From assembly GCA_965649765.1 (NCBI GenBank), contig OZ287753.1:62682001-62746000 (forward strand): DNA of 64,000 bases. The letters run 5' to 3'. This document shows positions 4,944-45,569 of the stretch, piece after piece (positions within the stretch are counted from its first letter, which is position 1; every line of letters begins with the position of its first letter). Origin of the DNA: Bispira polyomma (taxonomy: Eukaryota). Below the pieces are notes generated by a model that was not told the origin of the DNA, searched no databases, and worked only from the letters and a program-made list of their open reading frames with translations. The translations under genes were made by a program, and so were the position numbers.

Positions 4944-4989
4944 GTAAGTCTTAACAAGGAAGATCTCTGTAGAACTGAGGCTGTAATCT

Positions 4990-5580: not shown

Positions 5581-6578
5581 TGGTTTATAAGGCTTCGCAC
5601 AGTTAAGATAGAAGATCTACGGGAAAAGCTGAAAACAAAGGTTTGGAGAGGTTAGTAGTTTGGATTGCACCTTGCAGACTGTTATTCTTAATCTACAATG
5701 TCCTCCTGTTTAGTATTAGTCTGGGCAGTAGTAACATTGAAAACCATGATCATAAGATCACAACACAACACGTGCAAAATAATGGGACTAAGATGCAGAT
5801 ATTTAAGGTGAGTGAAAACAAAGTACAATTAATTGCAATTTGGGAGATTTTGTAAAACTTCAGTTGGTAAGTAATAATCTGTTAGAATAGATCTTGTATG
5901 ATCCCTGGAAGAAGGTATTTGTGTGTACTAACATTGTTAGAAAACCTACACAGTAGACACACAAATTGGAGGAAGGGCTACTTACCTAGATTCCTACTAG
6001 TAATGAATGCTTGGTGATGGTTCTTGCAAAATACTCATGATTTTGTATTATATCTTAATCAATTAGCATAGCTTTAAAAATAGTTTCCATGGAACTATTA
6101 GGGTTTTAGGGTTTGTAGTCACACCATGACAAATTGTCTCTTGTTGTATAGTTACTAATCATGTCATCAATTTTAATAGTAAATTGGCTAAAAGATTCGA
6201 AAAATGCCATCTTACCTGAACTTTAAAATACTATTGCTTTGTTTCATAGGTTTTGCTTCATAAAATTGTGTGGGCAAATGCTAATTACTGGCTATAAACA
6301 TGGTTGCTTCTACAAGTTTCTCTCTTTATTATGAGCTATAACCTCTGCTTCTCTGAGTTTTCATTTCACAAGCCACGAATTAAGTATATCTTCTAGTGAT
6401 TCACGCTCATTCCCTCCATCTTACCCTGCTCTGATTTCCTCCACTGGTGAACTGCCTATTCTGACCCCAGATGTGTTGACAGCAGTCTTAAATCCCAAAC
6501 TAAACTAAATTTGTCCTTGTTCCCTTCTCATATTCTCACTAATAATCCCTGCTTCATGCTGTCTCTCTCTAACTCAAG

Positions 6579-6872
6579 CTGGGGAGGATGAAGGCTTTGT
6601 ACATGTGCAATCTCCCAAGCCACAAGAGGACGATTTTATACAAATCCCATCTCCCCAACCCATGCAAACAGACCAAGATGCAGGATCTGTAGATTCCGAA
6701 AATGTAGTTCCTGAGGTGGACACCAGGAGAGGGGTCTATAGATCTCCTTCGGAGGTGGAACAGATGGAAATCTCTAGCAAGAAGCAGGAAGCTTACCTAG
6801 AACTGATCCAACAGATGGATCAGCTGGTGGGTGAAGAGCCAATAGAAACAGCCGAATCTGTCGAGGAGCTAG
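6579..6872 (+). CDS. 294-nt exon (AGEDEGFVHVQSPKPQEDDFIQIPSP...ESVEEL), phase 1/1
   Basis: In frame with ORF 6605-6877; CTAAC branch-like motif and AAG acceptor; G|GTTAGA donor; acidic protein-like translation. Confidence 0.75.
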
Positions 6873-20600: not shown

Positions 20601-20640
20601 AACAGCTGAGACCATTTGTGATATGCTTTGAACATTGCAG

Positions 20641-23600
20641 AATATGACATTCCAAAGAAGACTGATCTTGGTGATGAAATAATTGAAGAACAGTTTGAAA
20701 TTATAAGCAAACAGCAGCACTATTTTGATGAAGCACCACAGTCAGTGCCTGAACCTGTTGAACTATTGTCTCAACAAAAACAGGAAGATTTGATTTTAGA
20801 TTCTATGACATATAGTGACCCAGATCTATTGGAAGTAAAATCGCATCATGTGTCTTTGCAAGATCAGTTATCAGATGCAATAGATGATACAGGTGATGAA
20901 AATCTGTCCACTGAAACCAGTGTTGATGAATATATTGATGTAGATAACGATGGCACAACAGTTAAAACGACGGTCACAACTGTAAGGTATTTCCATAATA
21001 CACCGCTTGATTCTAAAAAACCTGTCAGGACAGAGATAAAAGAACAAGTTCATATATTACCACCAGGTGTTACAGGACCATATGGCGACAACCTCAAAAC
21101 TGAGACATCTACAACTCAAGAGCAACAGCAAACTGGGGATGGATTATGGCTCAATAAGACCAAAACAACAACTGTTTTTTCTGAGATGCACAGTGATCTC
21201 CAAAAATCTGTTACAGAAGAATACCCTGGGGAAATGGACAAAAGAACTGATGTTAAAGATTTGGATGAGATTAGAGATGATGGCACCCAAGTAAAAAGGA
21301 GAATTGTGATTGTTACACACTTTCAAAGAGTCACTAGAAGAACTGTGATTGAAAATACTGAAAGAACTGAACAAATAGAGAAACCAATAGGTACTGAAAT
21401 ATTGGAGACCATTGTTGAACTGGGTCCGGGTGTAGAAAGCCAGGATGATACAGGCACTGTGAAGAAAACAACAGAGAAAGAAGAGGAAGAAACTCTTGAA
21501 GATGGTACTTGGTTACAAAAGAAAACAACTACAACAAGTGTTTCATTACTTGAAAAGCCAGTATCACCAGAGGATGCAGAGATGGTACAGGGTCCTGCTG
21601 TGTTTGAAAAAGAGGAGATAGAAGGTACATTTGTTGATGCTGTGGATAGCACGGAAATGGTAGATTCAAGAGAAGAACCGGAAGCAGTGATTCAAGAGAT
21701 ACCTGGTGATGTAGAAAGCAGGATTGATGAGAGTGAGACTGAATATATTAGGGATGATGGTACAAAGATAAAAACAAAATCTGTAGTAAAGAAGTACTTC
21801 CAAGTAGCTACCTTAAAGAAAATTGGTGATGATTCAGATGAGACAGAGGTCATAGAAAAACCAGTGGGTACGGAAGTTACAGAAGACATTGTTGAACTTG
21901 AACCAGGTGTTGAAAGTTCAGAAGATCCAAATATTGTAACAAAGACTGCAGAAAGAGAAGAGGAAGAAACACTAGATGATGGAACATGGATGAAAAGGAA
22001 GGTCATTACCAAGATATGTACCTTAATATCAAAGGGGGTCTCACCACAACCCGAAGAAGCATCACCCGGTCATGAAATTGAAGAGAAGGATATTTTGACT
22101 GTCACAGACATTTCAGAGCCCGTCAGTGACCAGCAGATGGAACCGATTGTTGAGGAATACCCTGGAGAAATGGATAAAAGAACTGATGTTGAAGATTTGG
22201 ATGATATTAGAGATGATGGCACCCAAGTAAAAAGGAGAATTGTAATTGTTACACACTTTCAAAGAGTCACTAGAAGAACTGTGATTGAAAATACTGAAAG
22301 AACTGAAGAAGTAGAGAAACCAATAGGTACTGAAATATTGGAGACCATTGTTGAACTGGGTCCGGGTGTAGAAAGCCAGGATGATGAAGGAACTGTGAAG
22401 AAAACAACGGAGAAAGAGGAGGAAGAAACTCTTGAAGATGGTACTTGGTTACAAAAGAAAACAATTACAACAACTGTTTCATTACTTGAAAAGCCAGTAT
22501 CAGCAGAGGATGCAGAGATGGTACAGGGTCCTGCTGAGTTTGAGAAAGAGGAGATAGAAGGTGCATTTGTTGATGCTGTGGATAGCACGGAAATGGTAGA
22601 TTCAAGAGAAGAACCGGAAGCAGTGATTCAAGAGATTCCTGGTGATGTAGAAAGCAGCATTGATGAGGGTGAGACTGAAAATATTAGGGATGATGGTACA
22701 AAGATAAAAACAAAATCTGTAGTAAAGAAGTACTTCCAAGTAGTTACCCTAAAGAAAGTTGGTGATGATTCAGATGAGACAGAGGTCATAGAAAAACCAG
22801 TGGGTACCGAAGTTACAGAAGACATTGTGGAACTTGAACCAGGTGTTGAAAGTTCAGAAGATCCAAACATTGTCACAAAGACTACAGAAAGAGAAGAGGA
22901 AGAAACATTAGATGATGGAACATGGATGAAAAGGAAGGTCATTACCAAGACATGTACCTTAATATCAAAGGGGGTCTCACCACAACCCGAAGAAGCATCA
23001 CCCGGTCATGAAATTGAAGAGAAGGATATTTTGACTGACACAGACATTTCAGAGCCTGTCAGTGACCAGCAGATGGAACCGATTGTTGAGGAATACCCTG
23101 GAGAAATGGATAAAAGAACTGATGTTGAAGATTTGGATGATATTAGAGATGATGGCACCCAAGTAAAAAGGAGAATTGTAATTGTTACACACTTTCAAAG
23201 AGTCACTAGAAGAACTGTGATTGAAAATACTGAAAGAACTGAAGAAGTAGAGAAACCAATAGGTACTGAAATATTGGAGACCATTGTTGAACTGGGTCCG
23301 GGTGTAGAAAGCCAGGATGATGAAGGAACTGTGAAGAAAACAACGGAGAAAGAGGAGGAAGAAACTCTTGAAGATGGTACTTGGTTACAAAAGAAAACAA
23401 CTACAACAAGTGTTTCATTACTTGAAAAGCCAGTATCAGCAGAGGATGCAGAGATGGTACAGGGTCCTGCTGAGTTTGAGAAAGAGGAGATAGAAGGTGC
23501 ATTTGTTGATGCTGTGGATAGCACGGAAATGGTAGATTCAAGAGAAGAACCGGAAGCAGTGATTCAAGAGATTCCTGGTGATGTAGAAAGCAGCATTGAT

Positions 23601-26600
23601 GAGAGTGAGACTGAAAATATTAGGGATGATGGTACAAAGATAAAAACAAAATCTGTAGTAAAGAAGTACTTCCAAGTAGTTACCCTAAAGAAAGTTGGTG
23701 ATGATTCAGATGAGACAGAGGTCATAGAAAAACCAGTGGGTACCGAAGTTACAGAAGACATTGTGGAACTTGAACCAGGTGTTGAAAGTTCAGAAGATCC
23801 AAACATTGTCACAAAGACTACAGAAAGAGAAGAGGAAGAAACATTAGATGATGGAACATGGATGAAAAGGAAGGTCATTACCAAGACATGTACCTTAATA
23901 TCAAAGGGGGTCTCACCACAACCCGAAGAAGCATCACCTGGTCATGAAATTGCAGAGAAGGACATTTTGACTGACACAGACATTTCAGAGCCTGTCAGTG
24001 ACCAGCAGATGGAACCGATTGTTGAGGAATACCCTGGAGAAATGGATAAAAGAACTGATGTTGAAGATTTGGATGATATTAGAGATGATGGCACCCAAGT
24101 AAAAAGGAGAATTGTGATTGTTACACACTTTCAAAGAGTCACTAGAAGAACTGTGATTGAAAATACTGAAAGAACTGAAGAAGTAGAGAAACCAATAGGT
24201 ACTGAAATATTGGAGACCATTGTTGAACTGGGTCCGGGTGTAGAAAGCCAGGATGATGAAGGAACTGTGAAGAAAACAACGGAGAAAGAGGAGGAAGAAA
24301 CTCTTGAAGATGGTACTTGGTTACAAAAGAAAACAACTACAACAAGTGTTTCATTACTTGAAAAGCCAGTATCACCCAAGGATGCAGAGATGGTACAGGG
24401 TCCTGCTGAGTTTGAGAAAGAGGAGATAGAAGGTGCATTTGTTGATGCTGTGGATAGCACGGAAATGGTAGATTCAAGAGAAGAACCTGAAGCAGTGATT
24501 CAAGAGATACCTGGTGATGTAGAAAGCAGCATTGATGAGAGTGAGACTGAATATATTAGGGATGATGGTACAAAGATAAAAACAAAATCTGTAGTAAAGA
24601 AGTACTTCCAAGTAGTTACCCTAAAGGAAGTTGGTAATGATTCAGATGAGACAGAGGTCATAGAAAAACCAGTGGGTACCGAAGTTACAGAAGACATTGT
24701 GGAACTTGAACCAGGTGTTGAAAGTTCAGAAGATCCAAACATTGTCACAAAGACTACAGAAAGAGAAGAGGAAGAAACACTAGATGATGGAACATGGATG
24801 AAAAGGAAGGTCATTACCAAGACATGTACCTTAATATCAAAGGGGGTCTCACCACAACCCGAAGAAGCATCACCTGGTCATGAAATTGCAGAGAAGGACA
24901 TTTTGACTGACACAGACATTTCAGAGCCTGTCAGTGACCAGCAGATGGAACCGATTGTTGAGGAATACCCTGGAGAAATGGATAAAAGAACTGATGTTGA
25001 AGATTTGGATGATATTAGAGATGATGGCACCCAAGTAAAAAGGAGAATTGTGATTGTTACACACTTTCAAAGAGTCACTAGAAGAACTGTGATTGAAAAT
25101 ACTGAAAGAACTGAAGAAGTAGAGAAACCAATAGGTACTGAAATATTGGAGACCATTGTTGAACTGGGTCCAGGTGTAGAAAGCCAGGATGATGAAGGAA
25201 CTGTGAAGAAAACAACGGAGAAAGAGGAGGAAGAAACTCTTGAAGATGGTACTTGGTTACAAAAGAAAACAACTACAACAAGTGTTTCATTACTTGAAAA
25301 GCCAGTATCACCAGAGGATGCAGAGATGGTACAGGGTCCTGCTGAGTTTGAGAAAGAGGAGATAGAAGGTGCATTTGTTGATGCTGTGAATAGCACGGAA
25401 ATGGTAGATTCAAGAGAAGAACCGGAAGCAGTGATTCAAGAGATTCCTGGTGATGTGGAAAGCAGCATTAATGAGAGTGAGACTGAAAATTTTAGGGATG
25501 ATGGTACAAAGATAAAAACAAAATCTGTAGTAAAGAAGTACTTCCAAGTAGTTACCCTAAAGAAAGTTGGTGATGATTCAGATGAAACAGAGGTCGTAGA
25601 AAAACCAGTGGGTACCGAAGTTACAGAAGACATTGTGGAACTTGAACCAGGTGTTGAAAGTTCAGAAGATCCAAATATTGTAACAAAGACTACAGAAAGA
25701 GAAGAGGAAGAAACACTAGATGATGGAACATGGATGAAAAGGAAGGTCATTACCAAGACATGTACCTTAATGTCAAAGGGGGACTCACCACAACCTGAAG
25801 AAGCATCACCTGGTCATGAAATTGCAGAGAAGGACATTTTGACTGACACAGACATTTCAGAGCCTGTCAGTGACCAGCAGATGGAACCGATTGTTGAGGA
25901 ATACCCTGGAGAAATGGATAAAAGAACTGATGTTGAAGATTTGGATGATATTAGAGATGATGGCACCCAAGTAAAAAGGAGAATTGTGATTGTTACACAC
26001 TTTCAAAGAGTCACTAGAAGAACTGTGATTGAAAATACTGAAAGAACTGAAGAAGTAGAGAAACCAATAGGAACTGAAATATTGGAGACCATTGTTGAAC
26101 TGGGTCCGGGTGTAGAAAGCCAGGATGATGAAGGAACTGTGAAGAAAACAACGGAGAAAGAGGAGGAAGAAACTCTTGAAGATGGTACTTGGTTACAAAA
26201 GAAAACAACTACAACAAGTGTTTCATTACTTGAAAAGCCAGTATCACCAGAGGATGCACAGATGGTACAGGGTCCTGCTGAGTTTGAGAAAGAGGAGATA
26301 GAAGGTGCATTTGTTGATGCTGTGAATAGCACGGAAATGGTAGATTCAAGAGAAGAACCGGAAGCAGTGATTCAAGAGATTCCTGGTGATGTGGAAAGCA
26401 GCATTAATGAGAGTGAGACTGAAAATTTTAGGGATGATGGTACAAAGATAAAAACAAAATCTGTAGTAAAGAAGTACTTCCAAGTAGTTACCCTAAAGAA
26501 AGTTGGTGATGATTCAGATGAAACAGAGGTCGTAGAAAAACCAGTGGGTACCGAAGTTACAGAAGACATTGTGGAACTTGAACCAGGTGTTGAAAGTTCA

Positions 26601-29600
26601 GAAGATCCAAATATTGTAACAAAGACTACAGAAAGAGAAGAGGAAGAAACACTAGATGATGGAACATGGATGAAAAGGAAGGTCATTACCAAGACATGTA
26701 CCTTAATGTCAAAGGGGGACTCACCACAACCTGAAGAAGCATCACCTGGTCATGAAATTGCAGAGAAGGACATTTTGACTGACACAGACATTTCAGAGCC
26801 TGTCAGTGACCAGCAGATGGAACCGATTGTTGAGGAATACCCTGGAGAAATGGATAAAAGAACTGATGTTGAAGATTTGGATGATATTAGAGATGATGGC
26901 ACCCAAGTAAAAAGGAGAATTGTGATTGTTACACACTTTCAAAGAGTCACTAGAAGAACTGTGATTGAAAATACTGAAAGAACTGAAGAAGTAGAGAAAC
27001 CAATAGGAACTGAAATATTGGAGACCATTGTTGAACTGGGTCCGGGTGTAGAAAGCCAGGATGATGAAGGAACTGTGAAGAAAACAACGGAGAAAGAGGA
27101 GGAAGAAACTCTTGAAGATGGTACTTGGTTACAAAAGAAAACAACTACAACAAGTGTTTCATTACTTGAAAAGCCAGTATCACCAGAGGATGCACAGATG
27201 GTACAGGGTCCTGCTGAGTTTGAGAAAGAGGAGATAGAAGGTGCATTTGTTGATGCTGTGAATAGCACGGAAATGGTAGATTCAAGAGAAGAACCTAAAG
27301 CAGTGATTCAAGAGATTCCTGGTGATGTGGAAAGCAGCATTAATGAGAGTGAGACTGAAAATTTTAGGGATGATGGTACAAAGATAAAAACAAAATCTGT
27401 AGTAAAGAAGTACTTCCAAGTAGTTACCCTAAAGAAAGTTGGTGATGATTCAGATGAGACAGAGGTCATAGAAAAACCAGTGGGTACCGAAGTTACAGAA
27501 GACATTGTTGAACTTGAACCAGGTGTTGAAAGTTCAGAAGATCCAAACGTTGTCACAAAGACTACAGAAAGAGAAGAGGAAGAAACACTAGATGATGGAA
27601 CATGGATGAAAAGGAAGGTCATTACCAAGACATGTACCTTAATATCAAAGGGGGTCTCACCACAACCCGAAGAAGCATCACCTGGTCATGAAATTGAAGA
27701 GAAGGATATTTTGACTGTCACAGACATTTCAGAGCCTGTCAGTGACCAGCAGATGGAACCGATTGTTGAGGAATACCCTGGAGAAATGGATAAAAGAACT
27801 GATGTTGAAGATTTGGATGATATTAGAGATGATGGCACCCAAGTAAAAAGGAGAATTGTGATTGTTACACACTTTCAAAGAGTCACTAGAAGAACTGTGA
27901 TTGAAAATACTGAAAGAACTGAAGAAGTAGAGAAACCAATAGGTACTGAAATATTGGAGACCATTGTTGAACTGGGTCCGGGTGTAGAAAGCCAGGATGA
28001 TGAAGGAACTGTGAAGAAAACAACGGAGAAAGAGGAGGAAGAAACTCTTGAAGATGGTACTTGGTTACAAAAGAAAACAACTACAACAAGTGTTTCATTA
28101 CTTGAAAAGCCAGTATCAGCAGAGGATGCAGAGATGGTACAGGGTCCTGCTGAGTTTGAGAAAGAGGAGATAGAAGGTGCATTTGTTGATGCTGTGAATA
28201 GCACGGAAATGGTAGATTCAAGAGAAGAACCTAAAGCAGTGATTCAAGAGATTCCTGGTGATGTGGAAAGCAGCATTAATGAGAGTGAGACTGAAAATTT
28301 TAGGGATGATGGTACAAAGATAAAAACAAAATCTGTAGTAAAGAAGTACTTCCAAGTAGTTACCCTAAAGAAAGTTGGTGATGATTCAGATGAGACAGAG
28401 GTCATAGAAAAACCAGTGGGTACCGAAGTTACAGAAGACATTGTTGAACTTGAACCAGGTGTTGAAAGTTCAGAAGATCCAAACGTTGTCACAAAGACTA
28501 CAGAAAGAGAAGAGGAAGAAACACTAGATGATGGAACATGGATGAAAAGGAAGGTCATTACCAAGACATGTACCTTAATATCAAAGGGGGTCTCACCACA
28601 ACCCGAAGAAGCATCACCTGGTCATGAAATTGAAGAGAAGGATATTTTGACTGTCACAGACATTTCAGAGCCTGTCAGTGACCAGCAGATGGAACCGATT
28701 GTTGAGGAATACCCTGGAGAAATGGATAAAAGAACTGATGTTGAAGATTTGGATGATATTAGAGATGATGGCACCCAAGTAAAAAGGAGAATTGTGATTG
28801 TTACACACTTTCAAAGAGTCACTAGAAGAACTGTGATTGAAAATACTGAAAGAACTGAAGAAGTAGAGAAACCAATAGGTACTGAAATATTGGAGACCAT
28901 TGTTGAACTGGGTCCAGGTGTAGAAAGCCAGGATGATGAAGGAACTGTGAAGAAAACAACGGAGAAAGAGGAGGAAGAAACTCTTGAAGATGGTACTTGG
29001 TTACAAAAGAAAACAACTACAACAACTGTTTCATTACTTGAAAAGCCAGTATCACCAGAGGATGCAGAGATGGTACAGGGTCCTGCTGAGTTTGAGAAAG
29101 AGGAGATAGAAGGTGCATTTGTTGATGCTGTGAATAGCACGGAAATGGTAGATTCAAGAGAAGAACCGGAAGCAGTGATTCAAGAGATTCCTGGTGATGT
29201 GGAAAGCAGCATTAATGAGAGTGAGACTGAAAATTTTAGGGATGATGGTACAAAGATAAAAACAAAATCTGTAGTAAAGAAGTACTTCCAAGTAGTTACC
29301 CTAAAGAAAGTTGGTGATGATTCAGATGAAACAGAGGTCGTAGAAAAACCAGTGGGTACCGAAGTTACAGAAGACATTGTGGAACTTGAACCAGGTGTTG
29401 AAAGTTCAGAAGATCCAAATATTGTAACAAAGACTACAGAAAGAGAAGAGGAAGAAACACTAGATGATGGAACATGGATGAAAAGGAAGGTCATTACCAA
29501 GACATGTACCTTAATGTCAAAGGGGGACTCACCACAACCTGAAGAAGCATCACCTGGTCATGAAATTGCAGAGAAGGACATTTTGACTGACACAGACATT

Positions 29601-32600
29601 TCAGAGCTTGTCAGTGACCAGCAGATGGAACCGATTGTTGAGGAATACCCTGGAGAAATGGATAAAAGAACTGATGTTGAAGATTTGGATGATATTAGAG
29701 ATGATGGCACCCAAGTAAAAAGGAGAATTGTGATTGTTACACACTTTCAAAGAGTCACTAGAAGAACTGTGATTGAAAATACTGAAAGAACTGAAGAAGT
29801 AGAGAAACCAATAGGAACTGAAATATTGGAGACCATTGTTGAACTGGGTCCAGGTGTAGAAAGCCAGGATGATGAAGGAACTGTGAAGAAAACAACGGAG
29901 AAAGAGGAGGAAGAAACTCTTGAAGATGGTACTTGGTTACAAAAGAAAACAACTACAACAAGTGTTTCATTACTTGAAAAGCCAGTATCACCAGAGGATG
30001 CAGAGATGGTACAGGGTCCTGCTGAGTTTGAGAAAGAGGAGATTGAAGGTGCATTTGTTGATGCTGTGAATAGCACGGAAATGGTAGATTCAAGAGAAGA
30101 ACCTAAAGCAGTGATTCAAGAGATTCCTGGTGATGTGGAAAGCAGCATTAATGAGAGTGAGACTGAAAATTTTAGGGATGATGGTACAAAGATAAAAACA
30201 AAATCTGTAGTAAAGAAGTACTTCCAAGTAGTTACCCTAAAGAAAGTTGGTGATGATTCAGATGAGACAGAGGTCATAGAAAAACCAGTGGGTACCGAAG
30301 TTACAGAAGACATTGTTGAACTTGAACCAGGTGTTGAAAGTTCAGAAGATCCAAACGTTGTCACAAAGACTACAGAAAGAGAAGAGGAAGAAACACTAGA
30401 TGATGGAACATGGATGAAAAGGAAGGCCATTACCAAGACATGTACCTTAATATCAAAGGGGGTCTCACCACAACCCGAAGAAGCATCACCTGGTCATGAA
30501 ATTGAAGAGAAGGATATTTTGACTGTCACAGACATTTCAGAGCCTGTCAGTGACCAGCAGATGGAACCGATTGTTGAGGAATACCCTGGAGAAATGGATA
30601 AAAGAACTGATGTTGAAGATTTGGATGATATTAGAGATGATGGCACCCAAGTAAAAAGGAGAATTGTGATTGTTACACACTTTCAAAGAGTCACTAGAAG
30701 AACTGTGATTGAAAATACTGAAAGAACTGAAGAAGTAGAGAAACCAATAGGTACTGAAATATTGGAGACCATTGTTGAACTGGGTCCGGGTGTAGAAAGC
30801 CAGGATGATGAAGGAACTGTGAAGAAAACAACGGAGAAAGAGGAGGAAGAAACTCTTGAAGATGGTACTTGGTTACAAAAGAAAACAACTACAACAAGTG
30901 TTTCATTACTTGAAAAGCCAGTATCAGCAGAGGATGCAGAGATGGTACAGGGTCCTGCTGAGTTTGAGAAAGAGGAGATAGAAGGTGCATTTGTTGATGC
31001 TGTGAATAGCACGGAAATGGTAGATTCAAGAGAAGAACCTAAAGCAGTGATTCAAGAGATTCCTGGTGATGTGGAAAGCAGCATTAATGAGAGTGAGACT
31101 GAAAATTTTAGGGATGATGGTACAAAGATAAAAACAAAATCTGTAGTAAAGAAGTACTTCCAAGTAGTTACCCTAAAGAAAGTTGGTGATGATTCAGATG
31201 AGACAGAGGTCATAGAAAAACCAGTGGGTACCGAAGTTACAGAAGACATTGTTGAACTTGAACCAGGTGTTGAAAGTTCAGAAGATCCAAACGTTGTCAC
31301 AAAGACTACAGAAAGAGAAGAGGAAGAAACACTAGATGATGGAACATGGATGAAAAGGAAGGTCATTACCAAGACATGTACCTTAATATCAAAGGGGGTC
31401 TCACCACAACCCGAAGAAGCATCACCTGGTCATGAAATTGAAGAGAAGGATATTTTGACTGTCACAGACATTTCAGAGCCTGTCAGTGACCAGCAGATGG
31501 AACCGATTGTTGAGGAATACCCTGGAGAAATGGATAAAAGAACTGATGTTGAAGATTTGGATGATATTAGAGATGATGGCACCCAAGTAAAAAGGAGAAT
31601 TGTGATTGTTACACACTTTCAAAGAGTCACTAGAAGAACTGTGATTGAAAATACTGAAAGAACTGAAGAAGTAGAGAAACCAATAGGTACTGAAATATTG
31701 GAGACCATTGTTGAACTGGGTCCGGGTGTAGAAAGCCAGGATGATGAAGGAACTGTGAAGAAAACAACGGAGAAAGAGGAGGAAGAAACTCTTGAAGATG
31801 GTACTTGGTTACAAAAGAAAACAACTACAACAAGTGTTTCATTACTTGAAAAGCCAGTATCACCCAAGGATGCAGAGATGGTACAGGGTCCTGCTGAGTT
31901 TGAGAAAGAGGAGATAGAAGGTGCATTTGTTGATGCTGTGGATAGCACGGAAATGGTAGATTCAAGAGAAGAACCTGAAGCAGTGATTCAAGAGATACCT
32001 GGTGATGTAGAAAGCAGCATTGATGAGAGTGAGACTGAATATATTAGGGATGATGGTACAAAGATAAAAACAAAATCTGTAGTAAAGAAGTACTTCCAAG
32101 TAGTTACCCTAAAGGAAGTTGGTAATGATTCAGATGAGACAGAGGTCATAGAAAAACCAGTGGGTACCGAAGTTACAGAAGACATTGTGGAACTTGAACC
32201 AGGTGTTGAAAGTTCAGAAGATCCAAACATTGTCACAAAGACTACAGAAAGAGAAGAGGAAGAAACACTAGATGATGGAACATGGATGAAAAGGAAGGTC
32301 ATTACCAAGACATGTACCTTAATATCAAAGGGGGTCTCACCACAACCCAAAGAAGCATCACCTGGTCATGAAATTGAAGAGAAGGATATTTTGACTGTCA
32401 CAGACATTTCAGAGCCTGTCAGTGACCAGCAGATGGAACCGATTGTTGAGGAATACCCTGGAGAAATGGATAAAAGAACTGATGTTGAAGATTTGGATGA
32501 TATTAGAGATGATGGCACCCAAGTAAAAAGGAGAATTGTGATTGTTACACACTTTCAAAGAGTCACTAGAAGAACTGTGATTGAAAATACTGAAAGAACT

Positions 32601-33408
32601 GAAGAAGTAGAGAAACCAATAGGTACTGAAATATTGGAGACCATTGTTGAACTGGATCCGGGTGTAGAAAGCCAGGATGATGAAGGAACTGTGAAGAAAA
32701 CAACAGAGAAAGAAGAGGAAGAAACTCTTGAAGATGGTACTTGGTTACAAAAGAAAACAACTACAACAAGTGTTTCATTACTTGAAAAGCCAGTATCACC
32801 CAAGGATGCACAGATGGTACAGGGTCCTACTGAGTTTGAGAAAGGGGAAATAGAAGGTGCATTTGTTGATGCTGTGGATAGCACGGAAATGGTAGATTCA
32901 AGAGAAGAACCTGAAGCAGTGATTCAAGAGATACCTGGTGATGTAGAAAACAGGATTAATGAGAGTGAGACTGAATATATTAGGGATGATGGTACAAAGA
33001 TAAAAACAAAATCTGTAGTAAAGAAGTACTTCCAAGTAGTTACCCCAAAGAAAATTGGTGATGGTTTAGATGAGACAGAGGTCATAGAAAAACCAGTGGG
33101 TATGGAAGTTACAGAAGACATTGTTGAACTTGAACCAGGTGTTGAAAGTCAGGAAGATTCAAATATTGTAACAAAGACTACAAAAAGACAAGAGGAAGAA
33201 ACACTAGATGATGGAACATGGGTGAAAACGAATGTCATTACCAAGACATGTACCTTAATGACAAAACAGAGGTCACCACAACATGAAAATGATCTGGGGA
33301 GTGAATATATTAGTACACAAAATGCAATGGCTGAGCAAGAAAAAAGTTTAGATGAATTAGGTCCAGTTACAGAGGATTTGGATGATGGAGCAGAGTTTGA
33401 CAATCAAG
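20641..33408 (+). CDS. Giant exon 1 (12,768 nt, 4,256 codons): 13 x 312-aa acidic repeats; putative giant ankyrin-like exon
   Basis: ORF 20628-33425; TTGCAG acceptor ending 20640; AAG|GTAAGC donor at 33408/33409; phase 1/1. Confidence 0.9.
21219..33280 (+). repeat. Coding tandem array, 936-nt unit x 13 (last unit truncated and diverged)
   Basis: GAATACCCTGG recurs every 936 nt (21219, 22155 ... 32451); shadow antisense ORFs share the period. Confidence 0.97.
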
Positions 33409-33674
33409 GTAAGCTTGTAAGGTAGTACCACAGTTGTAAGTGTTGTCTAGCTATTTATGAATGACATTGTGTGAAAGTTATTTAGTTGAACTAGCTGTGA
33501 AAGAATGTACGTACGGAAGGATATATTTGTCTGACAATATGTTGCATGTATGTTTATGTGAAACCATGTCCAACTAACCATCAAATTATCAAGATAAGTT
33601 TCTTTTCCCTGTCGCCCATATGCACTAATAAATAGTAAGGTTACGATGTAAGCCAATAAATGATACTTTTGTAG

Positions 33675-36600
33675 GTGTAGATGCCGATGTAGCTGTTCAT
33701 ATTTATACAGATAGAATTGAAGGGGAACCAGAAACTGAAATTCAAGAATTGGAGGAAATTTTACCAGATGGCACAGTTGTTAAAAGACGTATAATTAGGA
33801 AGAAACAAAGTGAAACAATAGTAAAGCGTGTTGTAACAGAGTCATATGATGAAGAAGGTCAAAGTCTTCCTGAAAGCACAGAGATTTGTGGTGTTACTCT
33901 TGAGGAAGAGCCAGAAACAGATGTACAAGAATTTGATGAAGTATTGCCTGATGGTACTATTGTCAAGAGAAAAATTATCAAAACAAGAAGAACTGTTGTC
34001 AAGAAAATAATTTCAGAAGGTGAGGAAGTTATTCTTTCAGGTGCTGATGAATCCATAATGGCTGATGAAAAGGCACCCGTAGTGATGTTACCTGAGATTA
34101 GAGAAGGGGAAGTTGAAACCAGATCAGACACACAAGTAACTGAAGAAACAACAGATAATGGAACATACATCAAAAAGACCATTGTAACCACAATTCATTT
34201 CAAGCCAGTTGAAACCATTAGTGTACATGATGGAGTAAAAAAGGTAGAACAGACAGAAAAGCCAGTTGGCACAGAAATCAATGAGAATATTCTCCAGTTA
34301 GGGCCGGGAGTCGAAAGTCCAGATGCTGATAATGTCGACAAGAAAACTTCAGTGAAAGAAAGAGAGGATACTACTAATGAAGGAACGTGGGTAAAACATA
34401 AGATCACAACAGTTACAATAACATCCTTGAGAGTCACTGAGGCACCAGTATCAGAGCAGCTGAAACCATCAGAGCAGTTACGTGATGTAGTTGAAGATAT
34501 CATAGCTGGAGAATGTATGATGGTTGATGAAAGTGCTCCAGTAATGATGCCACCTGAGGTCAGAGAAGGGGATGTTGACACCAGATCGGACACACAAGTA
34601 ACTGAAGAAACAAAGGATGATGGAACATACATCCAAAGGACCATTGTAACCACAAGTCATTTTAAGCCAGTTGAAATCATTAGTGTACATGATGGAGTAG
34701 AAAAGGTGGAACAGACAGAAAAGCCAGTTGGCACAGAAATCAATGAGAATATTCTCCAGTTGGGGCCGGGAGTCGAAAGTCCAGATGCTGATAATGTTGA
34801 AAAGAAAACCTCAGTTAAAGAACAACAGGAAAGTACTAGTGAAGGAACTTGGATAAAGCATAAGATCACAACAGTTACAGTAACATCTTTAAGAGTCACT
34901 GATGCACCAATAGAAGAACAGCTCAAATCATCAGACCAGTCAACTGATGTAGAAGATATCATGGCTAGAGAATCTATGATGGTTGATGAAAGTGCTCCAG
35001 TAATGATGCCACCTGAGGTCAGAGAAGGGGATATTGACATCAGATCAGACACACAAGTAACTGAAGATACAAAGGATGATGGAACATACATCAAAAGGAC
35101 CATTGTGACCACAAGTCATTTCAAGCCAGTTGAAACCATTAGTGTACATGATGGAGTAGAAAAGGTGGAACAGACAGAAAAGCCAGTTGGCACAGAAATC
35201 AATGAGAATATTCTCCAGTTAGGGCCGGGAGTCGAAAGTCCAGATGCTGATAATGTTGAAAAGAAAACTTCAGTGAAAGAAAGAGAGGAAAGTACTAGTG
35301 AAGGAACTTGGGTAAGGCATAAGATCACAACAGTTACCGTAACATCTTTAAGAGTCACTGATGCACCAGTAGAAGAACAGCTCAAACCATCAGACCAGTC
35401 AACTGATGTAGAAGATATCATGGCTAGAGAATCTATGATGGTTGATGAAAGTGCTCCAGTAATGATGCCACCTGAGGTCAGAGAAGGGGATATTGACACC
35501 AGATCAGACACACAAGTAACTGAAGATACAAAGGATGATGGAACATACATCAAAAGGACCATTGTGACCACAAGTCATTTCAAGCCAGTTGAAACCATTA
35601 GTGTACATGATGGAGTAGAAAAGGTGGAACAGACAGAAAAGCCAGTTGGCACAGAAATCAATGAGAATATTCTCCAGTTGGGGCCAGGAGTCGAAAGTCC
35701 GGATGCTGATAATGTTGAAAAGAAAACTTCAGTGAAAGAAAGAGAGGAAAGTACTAGTGAAGGAACTTGGGTAAAGCACAAGATCACAACAGTTACAGTA
35801 ACATCTTTAAGAGTCGCTGATGCACCAATAGAAGAACAGCTGAAAGAAGGGGATGTTGAAACCAGATCAGATACACAAGTAACTGAGGAAACAAAGGATG
35901 ATGGAACTTACATCCAAAGGACCATTGCAACCACAAGTTATTTCAAGCCAGTTGAAACCATTAGTGTACATGATGGAGTAGAAAAGGTGGAACAGACAGA
36001 AAAGCCAGTTGGCACAGAAATCAATGAGAATATTCTCCAGTTAGGGCCGGGAGTCGAAAGTCCAGATGCTGATAATGTTGAAAAGAAAACTTCAGTGAAA
36101 GAAAGACAGGAAAGTACTAGTGAAGGAACTTGGGTAAGGCATAAGATCACAACAGTTACCGTAACATCTTTAAGAGTCACTGATGCACCAGTAGAAGAAC
36201 AGCTCAAACCATCAGACCAGTCAACTGATGTAGAAGATATCATGGCTAGAGAATCTATGATGGTTGATGAAAGTGCTCCAGTAATGATGCCACCTGAGGT
36301 CAGAGAAGGGGATATTGACACCAGATCAGACACACAAGTAACTGAAGATACAAAGGATGATGGAACATACATCAAAAGGACCATTGTGACCACAAGTCAT
36401 TTCAAGCCAGTTGAAACCATTAGTGTACATGATGGAGTAGAAAAGGTGGAACAGACAGAAAAGCCAGTTGGCACAGAAATCAATGAGAATATTCTCCAGT
36501 TGGGGCCAGGAGTCGAAAGTCCGGATGCTGATAATGTTGAAAAGAAAACTTCAGTGAAAGAAAGAGAGGAAAGTACTAGTGAAGGAACTTGGGTAAAGCA

Positions 36601-39600
36601 CAAGATCACAACAGTTACAGTAACATCTTTAAGAGTCGCTGATGCACCAATAGAAGAACAGCTGAAAGAAGGGGATGTTGAAACCAGATCAGATACACAA
36701 GTAACTGAGGAAACAAAGGATGATGGAACTTACATCCAAAGGACCATTGCAACCACAAGTTATTTCAAGCCAGTTGAAACCATTAGTGTACATGATGGAG
36801 TAGAAAAGGTGGAACAGACAGAAAAGCCAGTTGGCACAGAAATCAATGAGAATATTCTCCAGTTAGGGCCGGGAGTCGAAAGTCCAGATGCTGATAATGT
36901 TGAAAAGAAAACTTCAGTGAAAGAAAGGGAGGAAAGTACCAGTGAAGGAACTTGGGTAAGGCATAAGATCACAACAGTTACAGTAACATCTTTAAGAGTC
37001 ACTGATGCACCAATAGAAGAACAGCTCAAACCATCAGACCAGTCAACTGATATAGAAGATATCATGGCTAGAGAATCTATGATGGTTGATGAAAGTGCTC
37101 CAGTAATGATGCCACCTGAGGTCAGAGAAGGGGATGTTGACACCAGATCAGACACACAAGTAACTGAAGATACAAAGGATGATGGAACATACATCAAAAG
37201 GACCATTGTGACCACAAGTTATTTCAAGCCAGTTGAAACCATTAGTGTACATGATGGAGTAGAAAAGGTGGAACAGACAGAAAAGCCAGTTGGCACAGAA
37301 ATCAATGAGAATATTCTCCAGTTGGGGCCGGGAGTCGAAAGTCCAGATGCTGATAATGTTGAAAAGAAAACTTCAGTGAAAGAAAGAGAGGAAAGTACCA
37401 GTGAAGGAACTTGGGTAAGGCATAAGATCACAACAGTTACAGTAACATCTTTAAGAGTCACTGATGCACCAATAGAAGAACAGCTCAAACCATCAGACCA
37501 GTCAACTGATGTAGAAGATATCATAGCTAGAGAATCTATGATGGTTGATGAAAGTGCTCCAGTAATGATGCCACCTGTGGTCAGAGAAGGGGATGTTGAC
37601 ACCAGATCAGACACACAAGTAACTGAAGATACAAAGGATGATGGAACATACATCAAAAGGACCATTGTGACCACAAGTCATTTCAAGCCAGTCAAATCCA
37701 TTAGTGTACATGATGGAGTAGAAAAGGTGGAACAGACAGAAAAGCCAGTTGGCACAGAAATCAATGAGAATATTCTCCAGTTAGGGCCGGGAGTCGAAAG
37801 TCCAGATGCTGATAATGTTGAAAAGAAAACTTCAGTGAAAGAAAGAGAGGAAAGTACTAATGAAGGAACTTGGGTAAAGCACAAGTTCACAACAGTTACA
37901 GTAACATCTTTAAGAGTCGGTGATGCACCAATAGAAGAACAGCTCATAGAAGGGGATGTTGAAACCAGATCAGATACACAAGTAACTGAGGAAACAAAGG
38001 ATGATGGAACATACATCCAAAGGACCATTGTGACCACAAGTTGTTTCAAGCCAGTTGAAACCATTAGTGTACATGATGGAGTAGAAAAAGTGGAACAGAC
38101 AGAAAAGCCAGTTGGCACAGAAATCAATGAGAATATTCTCCAGTTGGGGCCGGGAGTCGAAAGTCCGGATGCTGATAATGTTGAGAAGAAAATTTCAGTG
38201 AAAGAAAGAGAGGAAAGTACCAGTGAAGGAACTTGGGTAAAGCATAAGATCACAACAGTTACAGTTACATCTTTAAGAGTCACTGATGCACCAATAGAAG
38301 AACAGCTCAAACCATCAGACCAGTCAACTGATGTAGAAGATATCATGGCTAGAGAATCTATGGTGGTTGATGAAAGTGCTCCAGTAATGATGCCACCTGA
38401 GGTCAGAGAAGGGGATGTTGACACCAGATCAGACACACAAGTAACTGAAGATACAAAGGATGATGGAACATACATCAAAAGGACCATTGTGACCACAAGT
38501 CATTTCAAGCCAGTTGAAACCATTACTGTACATGATGGAGTAGAAAAGGTGGAACAGACAGAAAAGCCAGTTGGCACAGAAATCAATGAGAATATTCTCC
38601 AGTTGGGGCCGGGAGTCGAAAGTCCAGATGCTGATAATGTTGAAAAGAAAACTTCAGTGAAAGAAAGAGAGGAAAGTACCAGTGAAGGAACTTGGGTAAG
38701 GCATAAGATCACAACAGTTACAGTAACATCTTTAAGAGTCACTGATGCACCAATAGAAGAACAGCTCAAACCATCAGACCAGTCAACTGATGTAGAAGAT
38801 ATCATAGCTAGAGAATCTATGATGGTTGATGAAAGTGCTCCAGTAATGATGCCACCTGTGGTCAGAGAAGGGGATGTTGACACCAGATCAGACACACAAG
38901 TAACTGAAGATGCAAAGGATGATGGAACATACATCAAAAGGACCATTGTGACCACAAGTCATTTCAAGCCAGTTGAAACCATTACTGTACATGATGGAGT
39001 AGAAAAGGTGGAACAGACAGAAAAGCCAGTTGGCACAGAAATCAATGAGAATATTCTCCAGTTGGGGCCGGGAGTCGAAAGTCCAGATGCTGATAATGTT
39101 GAAAAGAAAACTTCAGTGAAAGAAAGAGAGGAAAGTACCAGTGAAGGAACTTGGGTAAGGCATAAGATCACAACAGTTACAGTAACATCTTTAAGAGTCA
39201 CTGATGCACCAATAGAAGAACAGCTCAAACCATCAGACCAGTCAACTGATGTAGAAGATATCATAGCTAGAGAATCTATGATGGTTGATGAAAGTGCTCC
39301 AGTAATGATGCCACCTGAGGTCAGAGAAGGGGATGTTGACACCAGATCAGACACACAAGTAACTGAAGATACAAAGGATGATGGAACATACATCAAAAGG
39401 ACCATTGTGACCACAAGTCATTTCAAGCCAGTCAAATCCATTAGTGTACATGATGGAGTAGAAAAGGTGGAACAGACAGAAAAGCCAGTTGGCACAGAAA
39501 TCAATGAGAATATTCTCCAGTTAGGGCCGGGAGTCGAAAGTCCAGATGCTGATAATGTTGAAAAGAAAACTTCAGTGAAAGAAAGAGAGGAAAGTACTAA

Positions 39601-42575
39601 TGAAGGAACTTGGGTAAAGCACAAGATCACAACAGTTACAGTAACATCTTTAAGAGTCGCTGATGCACCAATAGAAGAACAGCTCATAGAAGGGGATGTT
39701 GAAACCAGATCAGATACACAAGTAACTGAGGAAACAAAGGATGATGGAACATACATCCAAAGGACCGTTGTGACCACAAGTTGTTTCAAGCCAGTTGAAA
39801 CCATTAGTGTACATGATGGAGTAGAAAAGGTGGAACAGACAGAAAAGCCAGTTGGCACAGAAATCAATGAGAATATTCTCCAGTTGGGGCCGGGAGTCGA
39901 AAGTCCGGATGCTGATAATGTTGAGAAGAAAATTTCAGTGAAAGAAAGAGAGGAAAGTACCAGTGAAGGAACTTGGGTAAAGCATAAGATCACAACAGTT
40001 ACAGTTACATCTTTAAGAGTCACTGATGCACCAATAGAAGAACAGCTCAAACCATCAGACCAGTCAACTGATGTAGAAGATATCATGGCTAGAGAATCTA
40101 TGGTGGTTGATGAAAGTGCTCCAGTAATGATGCCACCTGAGGTCAGAGAAGGGGATGTTGACACCAGATCAGACACACAAGTAACTGAAGATACAAAGGA
40201 TGATGGAACATACATCAAAAGGACCATTGTGACCACAAGTCATTTCAAGCCAGTTGAAACCATTACTGTACATGATGGAGTAGAAAAGGTGGAACAGACA
40301 GAAAAGCCAGTTGGCACAGAAATCAATGAGAATATTCTCCAGTTGGGGCCGGGAGTCGAAAGTCCAGATGCTGATAATGTTGAAAAGAAAACTTCAGTGA
40401 AAGAAAGAGAGGAAAGTACCAGTGAAGGAACTTGGGTAAGGCATAAGATCACAACAGTTACAGTAACATCTTTAAGAGTCACTGATGCACCAATAGAAGA
40501 ACAGCTCAAACCATCAGACCAGTCAACTGATGTAGAAGATATCATAGCTAGAGAATCTATGATGGTTGATGAAAGTGCTCCAGTAATGATGCCACCTGTG
40601 GTCAGAGAAGGGGATGTTGACACCAGATCAGACACACAAGTAACTGAAGATACAAAGGATGATGGAACATACATCAAAAGGACCATTGTGACCACAAGTC
40701 ATTTCAAGCCAGTCAAATCCATTAGTGTACATGATGGAGTAGAAAAGGTGGAACAGACAGAAAAGCCAGTTGGCACAGAAATCAATGAGAATATTCTCCA
40801 GTTAGGGCCGGGAGTTAAAAGTCCAGATGCTGAAAATGTTGAAAAGAGAACTTCAGTGAAAGAAAGAGAGGAAACTTCTGATGATGGTTCTTGGATGAAA
40901 CACAAAACAACCATTGTAACTTGTAGAGTAATTTCATCATTGAGTGAGCAACATAGTGAAATTGCAGTTCAGCAACTGGTTGAAACAGATATTGAAATAA
41001 ATACAGAACTTACAGAGTTCCAAGAAACTCTGGAGGATGGTACTGTAATCTATCATAAGACTATTAAAAAGACACATTCCAAAAGAATCCAAGAAGCTGA
41101 AAATGTTGATGGATTTGAAAAAGTTGATTTTGATAAAACACTATTAGGAACTGAAATTTCTGAAGAAATCTTACAGTTAGCTCCAGGTATTTTGCCAGAT
41201 CAAACAGAAAATATTGAAAAGAAAGCATCAACACAGACACAGGAGGAAATCCTGGACAATGGAACATGGTTGAAGAAAACAGTAACAACAGTATGTGTAA
41301 CTAGACAAGCAGAAGTAGAGTGTCCTGATGAATTAAGCAGTCAGAATCGAGGGATTCAATCCTGGTATCAGTTGCAAGATGATAATCGTGAATCAACCCC
41401 AGTTGCATCAGATGGACAATTTGATGAACAGTGTTACCATGAAACAGACTTAGCACGTGATGAAAGAGAACAGACTCCTGTTTTTGAAGAAGCACTGGAA
41501 GAGCAAATTGCAGAAGGTCAGGAACAGCTGCCACATGATATTCATCAGCCATTAACTCTTGACGAGTTAGATACATCACTGGAAGATTTTCAGCCAGATG
41601 AAGAGTTGATATCACCATCATCAGAGTATGAAGAAATAGAGGAAGTTCTGCCTGATGGTACTGTAATAACACGTAAAGTTTTGTCTCAAAGAATTAGAAA
41701 AACTGTAACTCGTAAAATTCGTAGGGTAGGGCCTGATGGTGAGGTAATAGAAGATGTTGTAACAGAAGAAATCCCTGAGACTGATCTTTTATCAGAATCT
41801 TCCAGGGCATCAAGTGTAATGTCTAGTATAAGTGATGCCCGTGAGTTAACATCCCCTATTCCTATGTCTCCTGTAGAATTAGGTACCCCAGTTGAATCAG
41901 AAACAGAACGTTCCTCAGTGAGAGTCTACACTGATACCATTGAAGGCGAACCAGAGATTGAGACAGATGTCCAAGAATTTGAAGAAACCCTTCCAGATGG
42001 CACCGTGGTGAAAAGGAAAGTTATTAAAACCAGACAGAAGCAGACTATTGTCAAAAGAGTGGTGATGGAAGGACCAGAAACAGATTTGCCTACCACTGAG
42101 GAACAAGCTCAAGCAATGCTGAGTCATGACGGAGGGTTCCAACCGGACATGAAGTACAGTGACTATACAGAGGAAGAACCACAAACGGCAACACAGGTTC
42201 AAGAATATGAGGAAACTATGCCTGATGGAAGTGTGGTGAAAAAGAAAATAGTGACTACAACAGAGGAACAAATGAAAACATCTCGCACTGTAATGGAAGC
42301 AAGTAGTCCACCACCAGAATTGATTGAAGGACAGCATATTTCCAGCTCTACAGATGAAGCAGATGACTTTGAAATTGTAAATTACCCAGTTGATGAATCA
42401 ATGGTAAAGCCAGAGTTTCTACCAGCAAAACCATTGAAACAGCCATACATGCCAGAAGGTGAGCAGAGTACAAAGGAAGATGTGCTAGCTGAGACGGATG
42501 ACTACTATGAGGTATCTGCAGAAGATGTTGGGTTGAGAGCAGTAGAGGAGCCTGATGTGGTCCCAAATCTTCAAG
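33675..42575 (+). CDS. Giant exon 2 (8,901 nt, 2,967 codons): 16 module repeats plus unique N- and C-terminal parts
   Basis: TTTTGTAG acceptor, in frame with ORF 33749-42589; AAG|GTAGAA donor; 266-nt intron from exon 1; phase 1/1. Confidence 0.88.
34070..40920 (+). repeat. Coding tandem array of 459-nt and 363-nt units, 16 modules
   Basis: Spacing of equivalent positions: 462,459,459,363,459,363,459,459,363,459,459,459,363,459,459. Confidence 0.95.
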
Positions 42576-45569
42576 GTAGAATGCTGTAGCTTTGTAGGCT
42601 TTATCCTTGCGCTGTGCACACCTGTCAACCAATAACTACTGCTAGCTGACATCGCTTGGTTTCCTGCTGCTTGGTGACTAGTGCTGCTAATTCCTTGATT
42701 TAACCCTTGTAAATATTTAGCATGTGAAGGAGAAGGGTAGAAAGCTTTTAGGTGGTGTGGTATCTGCTGTGTTGTTAATATAGTAACTCCTTGCTTTTTC
42801 TGATGATCCTTGTATATAAGTAAATTAAGAAGCAAAACTTTGATAGTCAAAATACTAATTATGTGTGTCATTTGTTCTGCTTCTGTGATGTGTTTCATAC
42901 TAATACTCTCGATGTACATATCTAAGAAAATGTTATAAAAATGGCTTCAGCCTTATATGTTAAGGGTTTCCATTTCTGATCCTATGAATTTAGTTGTCTT
43001 GGTTACAAAGAATGCATATACTGAGTGGAAAAGAGAATGTATAGTTTGGTCAGGGGATCCATAACTGGTGACTTTATAATAATTAACGTAATAAGTTGAG
43101 CCAGAGATTATTGGAAAATTGAGAATGTTGTAGGCAATTACATTATATCTTGTTGAAAGAAATCTCAAAAAAAAGTTTCATTGAGGAGTGAGGATTTCAA
43201 AGGACTATGATAAATAAACGTCATTGAGACTTGGTATTTCTTTGTACCTCTGTGATTTCCCTTTGTAAATGAAAATGTGCATGGATTGTTTATTGTAGAA
43301 ATTTTCTGAAAATGTGCATCACTTGACCTTTGTCTTCCATATCTCTGAAGTTGGTGTAACTTGATGCTGGTAATTATTAGTCATGCAATTCCTTCCAGTA
43401 ACACAAATATTTGAATTATACCGATTAGAATATTACACTCTGGAATATCTAATTGCTGCTTCTATAAAGGTATCAAGCTTTGATCTTACACTGACATGCC
43501 TTTATGTGGGAAAGTATGTCAGGTACTTACCTTAGGGTGTTATACATTAATATTGATTAAAACTAGTCTAAAAAAGACTAAAAAATTTCTTCATATTATA
43601 CTGACACCTTAGCCGAATCATGCCAGGTTTTTCCATGATGTTTGTCTTTGGTTGGTTTTGAAATAAAGTTAAGTTGATGTTTAACCTGTATATCAGGAAT
43701 ATGTGCACAGATTTTAAATACCCAGACTCCTAAAATTTGCTTTTGAGAACCAGTTCAAGTTACACCAACTTTACTACTAGCTTGTGTAACCTATAGATCA
43801 TGAGAGGATATTTATAGTATAGTATCTGTTTATCGGAACACTGTGAGAAGAACCTGTCCGTATAAGAGAATAATGCATAGTATAGAAGAACTATTTTAAC
43901 ATAAAATAACATAAACATTCACATAGTAAAGTATAAGCATGTCTAAGTGACTTCTTATGGATAAATCGATGTATCAATTCATTATTAAAGCAAATTGATG
44001 AAGTAGATAGAATTGAATGAAGCAAATTAATGAAGTAGATAGAATTGAATGACTCCGAGTGGTTCTATATTTTTGCATGTTTTACACGATGCCTATGTTG
44101 AGGAAATATGTTTAGCGATAAACAAAGTGTAGACAAAAACAATTTTTTTTTTTCAAAATAAATACGTTTCGTAATGTAGTTGCGTATGTCACAAGATTTT
44201 ACTTAGACAATATTTGACAAATTTTGGTACTGTTTATACATAGTGGGATATAAAATGTCAATCTTTGTAAATAAATATTTTTATGATTAAAAATTGTACA
44301 TCTTCTCAAATGTTGAACAGAAAGTAAACCTGTGTGGAAAAGTTCGTCTTTTGAAATAACTTGTCTTGCAATATCATAAAAGTCTGGTCAAACCTCTGTT
44401 TTATTGATTCATAAGCACTCGGTACTTTAATGTTGTGTGTGAATGGTTTATTTTGTAAACCTGTTACAGTATGCTTGGAGGTTGACCTACCTTTCATACC
44501 CTGAATGCGTATGTAGTCTTCTTTGCTGTACCGTTTGTAAAACTTACTAAATGCACTTCAGTGTCATGTGTCAAACAACACTTTTATGATGTATTACCCT
44601 TACCAGTGATAAATGATTTCATACCTGTGTTAAAATGTAGATAATTCTTTGCAATTAAATTTCTCATGAAAACTGCAACTTAAGTATTGTTAATTTTCAC
44701 ATTTGATTTACACATTTCGACACGGAAGTGCATTTAACAGTTCCATTCAACAATGGAGCATTAATTTAAAGTGGTACTGAACTTATATGATACAAGAAAA
44801 TAAGATTGGTTTGCTGTAAATGTCTGCTCTAATAGTCACCACTGCACTTTGGGCAAAGTCGGGGGTTTCGAGGTAGGGTGGTTCAGTGAAGTCTATAAAG
44901 TGTCATGGGTTTTGATACATGGTTTGGGGATTACTGTAAATAACTTATCTGCATTATCTTATCTTCTTGTGTGATGTAAACTCTTAATAAACTAAGAATT
45001 TATTTGACTGTTGTAATTTATTTGTATTTTTTCATAACTATTCGTGTATAACTTGCATATGGAATATAACTCTGTTTGAACTAATTTATATACATAACAA
45101 TACTATATATTCACCAGTTACTAAGACTTAAATTGGTTATTTATATACAGTAGCTTTTATCACATGTATGTTTTCAGAACCAACACACATTTAATTTGCA
45201 AAAAAAAACAAAACAATTATCTAAATTATTTATAAATATCATTTCTGTATTATTTTGGTAAACTGTTTTACTGTTCTATATATACATGTATATTGGTGAA
45301 TGTTTAAATATATGCAGAAATCCTGCAGTTTTCTTGCTAGGTTATAATGATGGCAATGCTTCATTCAACCATAACAGTATCTTAAAAAGCTTCTAACATA
45401 ATTGCTTTGTTTTTGTTGCTATTTTGTATGTTGTTGAACAGCAACACTAACTTTAAGTTTTAAGTCTTCTTTACATCTTGAAGTAAATCTATAAATGTCA
45501 AAAAGTACCGTCAGTAGATTGTAAAATATAAGCTATCTAGATATTAAATACCTGTATGTTTTGTTGTAG

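Follow-up and report, generated by a model that had tools for sequence, protein, structure and literature searches.

A candidate folded module of about 110 residues, repeated 44 times across two giant exons assigned to a giant ankyrin gene

Giant ankyrins organise axons, with roles at the initial segment, in microtubule spacing and in axon calibre. The long exons of the described members (Drosophila Ank2-L/XL, C. elegans UNC-44 and the vertebrate 440/480-kDa ankyrin-B/G) measure 9-13 kb, are acidic and built of repeats, and stand two or three in tandem (PMC5135030); in protostome ankyrins they lie downstream of the death domain (PMC5135030). The published long-exon repeats are 12-76 residues long, with recognisable homology only between very close species (PMC5135030, Jegla et al.), and no homology has been reported between the long exons of different phyla (PMC5135030). 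The giant region of ankyrin-B is disordered by circular dichroism (CD) (PMC7401806, Chen et al.). Here we analyse 64,000 nucleotides of Bispira polyomma (contig OZ287753.1, positions 62,682,001 to 62,746,000, forward strand), referred to as the window, in which two giant exons encode a module of about 110 residues in 44 copies. The exons share the family and the position downstream of the death domain with the described giant ankyrins. What is known is thus a giant ankyrin gene with repeat-built long exons; what is new is a large, conserved unit that is predicted to fold. We consider it probable that these exons encode duplication-derived folded modules which, 44 in series, act as an acidic segmented rod, spacer or tether.

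The module array in the two giant exons

The array occupies two long stop-free frames separated by a short intron, and its parts are as follows (window coordinates, all on the plus strand):

20622-33422 and 33632-42586, plus: stop-free frames with repetitive translations
20641-33408, plus: giant exon 1, 12,768 bases, a multiple of 3; acceptor ttgcag/A, donor CAAG/GTAAGC; phase 1 at both ends
20892-21182, plus: first module, diverged; profile E 4e-25, 31% identity to the exon-2 module
21222-33257, plus: 26 modules forming 13 A/B super-units of 936 bases each, from anchors, alignment and profile
33409-33674, plus: intron between exons 1 and 2, 266 bases, GT..AG, phase 1
33675-42589, plus: giant exon 2, about 8.9 kb; acceptor tgtag/G; phase 1
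33725-34021, plus: degenerate tail-type module opening exon 2, in which the hairpin motif LPDGTxVKRK occurs twice; profile E 2.8e-10 and 2.8e-8
34097-40930, plus: 16 modules of the exon-2 type; units of 153 aa include a 41-aa linker, those of 121 aa are almost linkerless
40976-41305, plus: last module, diverged; profile E 2.5e-34, 35% identity to the main exon-2 module
41600-42262, plus: conserved ankyrin C-terminal tail, one hairpin motif and one degenerate module
41600-41779, plus: tail hairpin motif; profile E 2.3e-7
41936-42262, plus: tail degenerate module; profile E 6.8e-19
42587-42589, plus: stop codon, one possible end of exon 2; phase-1 donors at 42458/GTGAGC and 42575/GTAGAA are the alternatives

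Exon 1 contains 27 occurrences of the anchor motifs KPxGxE and DGTW, and exon 2 contains 16-17. Their spacing in exon 1 is 121 aa at the first step and afterwards alternates between 159 and 153 aa without exception, while in exon 2 it is either 153 or 121 aa. Cut in register, all 44 copies align over about 110 residues without indels and fall into five types: the diverged first copy, exon-1 A, exon-1 B, the exon-2 type and the diverged last copy. With a profile based on a diverse set of modules, 27 full-length matches were obtained in exon 1 and another 17 in exon 2, their E values ranging from 4e-25 to 5e-41. The profile therefore reproduces the initial annotation, made from the letters alone, which had counted about 44 modules over two giant exons in the layout 1+26+16+1; the diverged end copies, which it had placed at 20905-21180 and 40980-41300, are recovered with slightly shifted borders. 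The acidic linkers that it had described between the modules carry a net charge of -7 to -12, and the modules themselves -10 to -14.

Each exon-1 super-unit consists of module A, a 47-aa acidic linker, module B and a 41-aa acidic linker. The super-units are 95.5-100% identical to one another, except for the last at about 88%. Their 936-base length exceeds the period limit of Tandem Repeats Finder, which detected, in exon 2, units of 459 and 363 bases with 93-97% identity. The copy number hinges on the assembly of a long, near-identical array; arrays of this order are nevertheless real, since relatives have 39 and 42 modules in a single open frame. Super-units 6, 7 and 8 are, pairwise, 99.4%, 99.5% and 100% identical to super-units 9, 10 and 11 (25896-31511), which is either a very recent duplication of a 2.8-kb three-unit block or an echo of the assembly.

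The splice sites of the giant exons were read off the genomic sequence. Every border read is phase 1, so that the giant exons could be joined or skipped in frame. Sequencing runs of the same organism are genomic, and they cover the intron at 33409-33674. Run X4, from a related organism with a divergence of about 4%, contains a 542-base contig that lacks 266 bases, bounded by GT..AG, precisely where the intron is predicted; the gap of this contig spans 33407-33672, and the cut is equally compatible two places further on. The size and the spliced joint of run X4 fit a transcriptome, despite an automatic guess of DNA. At the exon-2 end, reading on to the stop codon would yield a protein finishing after the tail, and splicing from one of the donors would continue it into a third giant exon. 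Such alternative ends would recall the fly Ank2 L and XL isoforms.

52303-64000, plus: third giant exon, at least 11.7 kb, leaving the window; phase-1 acceptor ttttttttaag/A

This third exon encodes a different, very acidic repeat that is unrelated to the module, and the module profile finds no match in 52303-64000. In a relative, L007, the module exon is followed 4.4 kb further downstream by an open frame of 10,191 residues; the order of a module exon followed by another giant exon is therefore conserved.

Two further observations concern the remainder of the window. Regular antisense open frames of 151, 272 and 781 aa run in step with the repeat units at 34195-40695 and 52790-63991 (minus strand); they look like by-products of the repeat composition rather than genes. 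Positions 1-1067 hold a tandem array with a period of 142 bases (alternative readings 192, 279 and 334) and 77-94% identity, probably a satellite or an element like a short interspersed nuclear element in an intron.

Predicted fold and origin of the module

For the structure prediction of a single module we supplied AlphaFold2 with an alignment of the 44 modules, 23-46% identical to the query. The resulting model has a mean predicted local distance difference test score (pLDDT) of 97.1, with all five models at 95-97, and a predicted template modelling score (pTM) of 0.79. It comprises six strands, at residues 2-4, 8-19, 25-45, 48-69, 81-93 and 99-111, two of which are very long (21-22 residues). 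The predicted turns coincide with the conserved DDGT, DG and (P)DGT motifs, and an 11-residue loop carries the conserved PPGVxxP. A model of two modules, built from 61 diverse pairs, repeats the single-module pattern twice with a pLDDT of 94.1, while the nine-residue joint falls to about 62 and the pTM is 0.48; the model thus shows two well-defined units in no fixed orientation to each other. The module is therefore predicted to be an independently folding, six-strand antiparallel beta unit. Both the beta-hairpin-rich domain and the beads-on-a-string arrangement of the initial annotation agree with these models, the latter through the two independent units and their low-confidence hinge.

Across 673 distinct modules from 178 proteins, the G, P, W and DG positions are conserved. 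Hydrophobic positions in the same set are sparse and spaced i/i+4, and only about 25% of the residues are hydrophobic.

Searches by sequence and by shape agree with the earlier view that the module is unnamed. In Pfam, scanned with exon pieces, the 44 modules and tail pieces, no family matches the module above its gathering threshold, single modules reaching no more than chance-level scores, and the module profile matches none of the solved chains searched by sequence. No Ig or Fn3 domain appears among the Pfam matches of the 44 modules or among the fold matches, in line with the absence of such a signature noted from the translations. Foldseek against the PDB gives no match to the module model at E <= 0.001, with template modelling (TM) scores of at most 0.3, leaving it without a confident fold neighbour; VIA-align against 48,161 representatives reaches a best Z of 4.6, and the re-examined top Foldseek matches a best Z of 4.5. 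An Atlas shape search yields a TM score of 0.62 to an unnamed cluster of 251 aa, possibly a homologous fragment. The ESM Atlas feature search gives no usable match for the module and, for the tail, leads at 0.76-0.78 to unnamed arthropod clusters. In the published literature we found no description of this module.

Several candidates were discarded. PF23479, an apicomplexan microprotein, scores 31.7 bits against a cut-off of 27 on a 500-aa piece of exon 2 by summing 23-residue matches, and a single module scores 14.8. Matches to CDGP, DUF7196 and DUF7631 are likewise sums of short hairpin matches, and those to CDGP in relatives vanish once the matched stretch is scanned alone. For the G5 domain (PF07501), the best Pfam match has E 0.29, with 11.9 bits against a cut-off of 23, and is confined to the tail hairpin; the structural Z is 2.8-3.0. 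The weak rows of the fold searches include pore formers and SSB arms, both with long hairpins, as well as SasG and Aap, whose flat G5/E repeats score Z about 3; we treat all these likenesses as analogies at most.

The sequence of the module offers a clue to its origin. Compared by hhalign, its N-terminal and C-terminal halves match (probability 96.6%, E 6.8e-10, 37 columns) and have in common a hairpin motif of about 37 residues, TxVxExEExLPDGTxVKxKxTT. This motif recurs where exon 2 begins (33725-34021) and again in the tail (41600-42262); there, two hairpins flanking a different middle are matched by the module profile over its whole length, with E 6.8e-19. The exon-2 tail in turn aligns with the tails of the relative P0016 and of Helobdella. 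Since both the hairpin motif and the profile match are common to them, the module is a relative of the ankyrin tail. An internal duplication of the hairpin motif probably gave rise to the module, the same motif building the conserved tail; the arrays would then have been enlarged by tandem and block duplication, and their copies homogenised by concerted evolution. It is possible, and we propose it tentatively, that the module represents a new domain family with a fold absent from solved structures, a flat and highly charged beta meander made by duplicating the C-terminal hairpin of ankyrin.

A repeat of C. elegans UNC-44 (VIETTTTTTVTREHF...) and a 60-residue sea-urchin repeat (..ITTTYTEKETHEVVVKE..) resemble the KxKxTTTxHF strand of the module (PMC5135030, Table S4). 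This resemblance may hint at a deeper homology of the long exons.

Comparison with the closest relative, the ortholog P0038, reveals 39 modules in the same A/B alternation. Its identity to our array is 71-73% in the module cores and 47-53% in the linkers. Between copies within the present gene, the ratio of non-synonymous to synonymous variation (pN/pS) is 0.33 for the exon-1 modules and 0.47 for the exon-2 modules, and it reaches 2.4 in the exon-2 linkers (3 synonymous and 28 non-synonymous variants).

The ankyrin gene and its relatives

Long open frames carrying the same module turned up when the end of exon 2 was used in a word search. One protein found in this way, Ridgeia piscesae KAK2178741.1 (P0033, 6,670 residues), has an N-terminal UPA and death domain followed by 31 modules. 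Searching the genome of the window with the Ridgeia N terminus located the UPA and death-domain exons, given here in the numbering of contig C6, in which the window starts at 62682001:

C6:62649992-62650222, plus: ZU5 exon, the best ZU5 match of the genome at 79 bits; the single ZU5 exon listed
C6:62664183 and C6:62669095, plus: UPA exons, found with the Ridgeia N terminus
C6:62673072-62673254 and C6:62673910-62674050, plus: death-domain exons, 66-67% identical to the Ridgeia death domain

All of these are on the strand of the module exons: the UPA and death-domain exons precede the window start by 8-18 kb, and the ZU5 exon lies another 14 kb upstream. On the strength of these sequence matches, the two module exons are assigned to a giant ankyrin gene, in which they follow the exons for ZU5, UPA and the death domain, as is the rule in protostomes. 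In another organism, the UPA and death domain are likewise followed by an open frame, there with a single module. Within the window, the open stretches at 4868-5047 and 6509-6874 (plus strand) show weak similarity to the region behind the Ridgeia death domain (tblastn E 0.08 and 0.6) and probably represent additional exons of this gene.

Searched with the module profile, 1.84 billion cluster representatives yielded 184 proteins at E <= 0.001, which form three groups. The first comprises arrays of 3-42 modules. The second consists of open frames with a single module within acidic repeats, one of them just behind UPA and death-domain exons. In the third, frames of about 1,800-2,100 residues pass from the end of UPA directly into 10-12 modules and the tail; here, metagenome contigs L006, L008 and L009 included, no death domain was found within 8 kb downstream. 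Such UPA-to-module frames may represent either another architecture of the gene or the use of an alternative terminal exon, and the Helobdella model is alike. Module length stays at about 103-113 residues among the relatives, and neighbouring modules are spaced between 103 aa (linkerless) and about 175 aa apart. The two named relatives are both annelids: Ridgeia piscesae KAK2178741.1 and Helobdella robusta XP_009010258.1, titled "Ankyrin UPA domain-containing protein", in which the repeats are degenerate and the tail is clear. A word search with the Ridgeia modules added five unnamed proteins. The ankyrin identity of the gene, the occurrence of the module in other animals and its construction from the tail motif are additions to the initial annotation.

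Proposed function and comparison with known systems

In the mechanism that we favour, the modules would be linked by nine-residue hinges or by acidic linkers of 41-47 residues, and 44 folded acidic units in series would form a long segmented rod. This rod would extend the ankyrin tail outward from the membrane skeleton, the array serving as a spacer or tether of defined contour length. Folded beads would thereby take on the role ascribed to the repeat exons of fly Ank2-XL, which have been proposed as a spacer (PMC5135030), and to the disordered giant exons of vertebrates.

Several points weigh against this proposal. The fold is a prediction, and AlphaFold can be over-confident on repetitive, beta-prone sequence. 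With hydrophobic residues few and at i/i+4 spacing, the stability of an isolated module is uncertain. The pN/pS of the exon-1 linkers, 0.41 on small counts, is no higher than that of the modules. Strongly acidic modules are also ill suited to bind the acidic microtubule surface directly. Finally, we infer the join between the death domain and exon 1 from position, strand, phase and the gene models of relatives, rather than from a transcript.

Alternatively, the array would be an acidic, beta-prone disordered tail resembling other giant ankyrin exons, the modules not being stably folded and the AlphaFold confidence being an artefact of a repetitive alignment. Published giant-exon regions are indeed disordered by prediction and by CD (PMC7401806), the module combines about 25% hydrophobic residues with a large net charge, and its model resembles no solved structure. 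We nevertheless regard a disordered tail as quite unlikely: the pLDDT stays at 95-97 in all five models despite input identities of only 23-46%, the 44 copies contain zero indels, module length is steady over the 673 distinct copies, and between species the cores are conserved well beyond the linkers. Another alternative is that the module exons form a separate gene that merely lies downstream of an ankyrin gene. A transcript connecting the death-domain exons with exon 1 was not seen in this genome, which such a gene would fit; the idea is very improbable all the same, as the module exons share strand and order with the ankyrin exons and have phase-compatible borders, small upstream exons resemble the Ridgeia region behind the death domain, UPA is fused to modules in the Ridgeia and Helobdella gene models and in uninterrupted frames of other organisms, and exon 2 ends in the conserved ankyrin tail.

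Binding rather than spacing could also account for a folded array. Each module might be a docking site for a partner, either a protein or, at the acidic DDGT/PDGT turns, a cation such as Ca2+; the 44 copies would then be a multivalent platform that concentrates this partner along the axon cortex, and length would be secondary. In fact, conservation is highest at surface turns and loops (LxDGT, ELPPGV, LPDGTW) and not in a hydrophobic core, the lone module just behind the death domain in some lineages suits a binding site better than a spacer, and the hairpin motif has been retained in the ankyrin tail from leech to this genome. A purely structural hairpin would, however, equally require the glycines and prolines of the turns, and a copy number of 1 to 42 among relatives is typical of spacer arrays. 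We therefore find a binding platform doubtful as the principal function and retain the segmented rod as our preferred interpretation.

Compared with known systems, the array has two structural analogues. The G5-E repeats of SasG and Aap are also tandem, elongated, all-beta units with few hydrophobic residues, and the structural alignments to the module give Z 3.0 for the Aap B-repeats, 2.9 for the G5 domain of IgA1 protease and 2.8 for SasG. These proteins are extracellular and bacterial, whereas the present one is cytoplasmic and animal, and the scores lie below significance, so that the comparison is an analogy at most. The Ig/Fn3 chains of titin similarly string beta domains of about 100 residues like beads in the product of a giant gene. 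The module differs from them in matching neither Ig nor Fn3, in its far longer strands (21-22 residues) and in that a beta-sandwich core is not evident from its sparse hydrophobic pattern; the "titin-like spring" should accordingly be read as an analogy.

The closest comparison is with the giant ankyrins themselves, whose long-exon regions have been described as fast-evolving, disordered and non-comparable across phyla. The published regions are regarded as unstructured, whereas here a predicted folded unit of about 110 residues is common to distant annelids. If this prediction holds, the module would add a domain family to the databases, and a single 110-residue unit would be a tractable object, amenable to CD, crystallography and force spectroscopy. 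The module and the tail motif would provide a first sequence marker for the history of long exons that were previously too divergent to compare, and the kinship of the module with the conserved ankyrin tail would offer a handle on their origin. Annelid giant ankyrins would then be folded-domain rods of genetically set length and not disordered threads, and a folded module in 44 copies, found in distant annelids, would accomplish the same task by another structural route.

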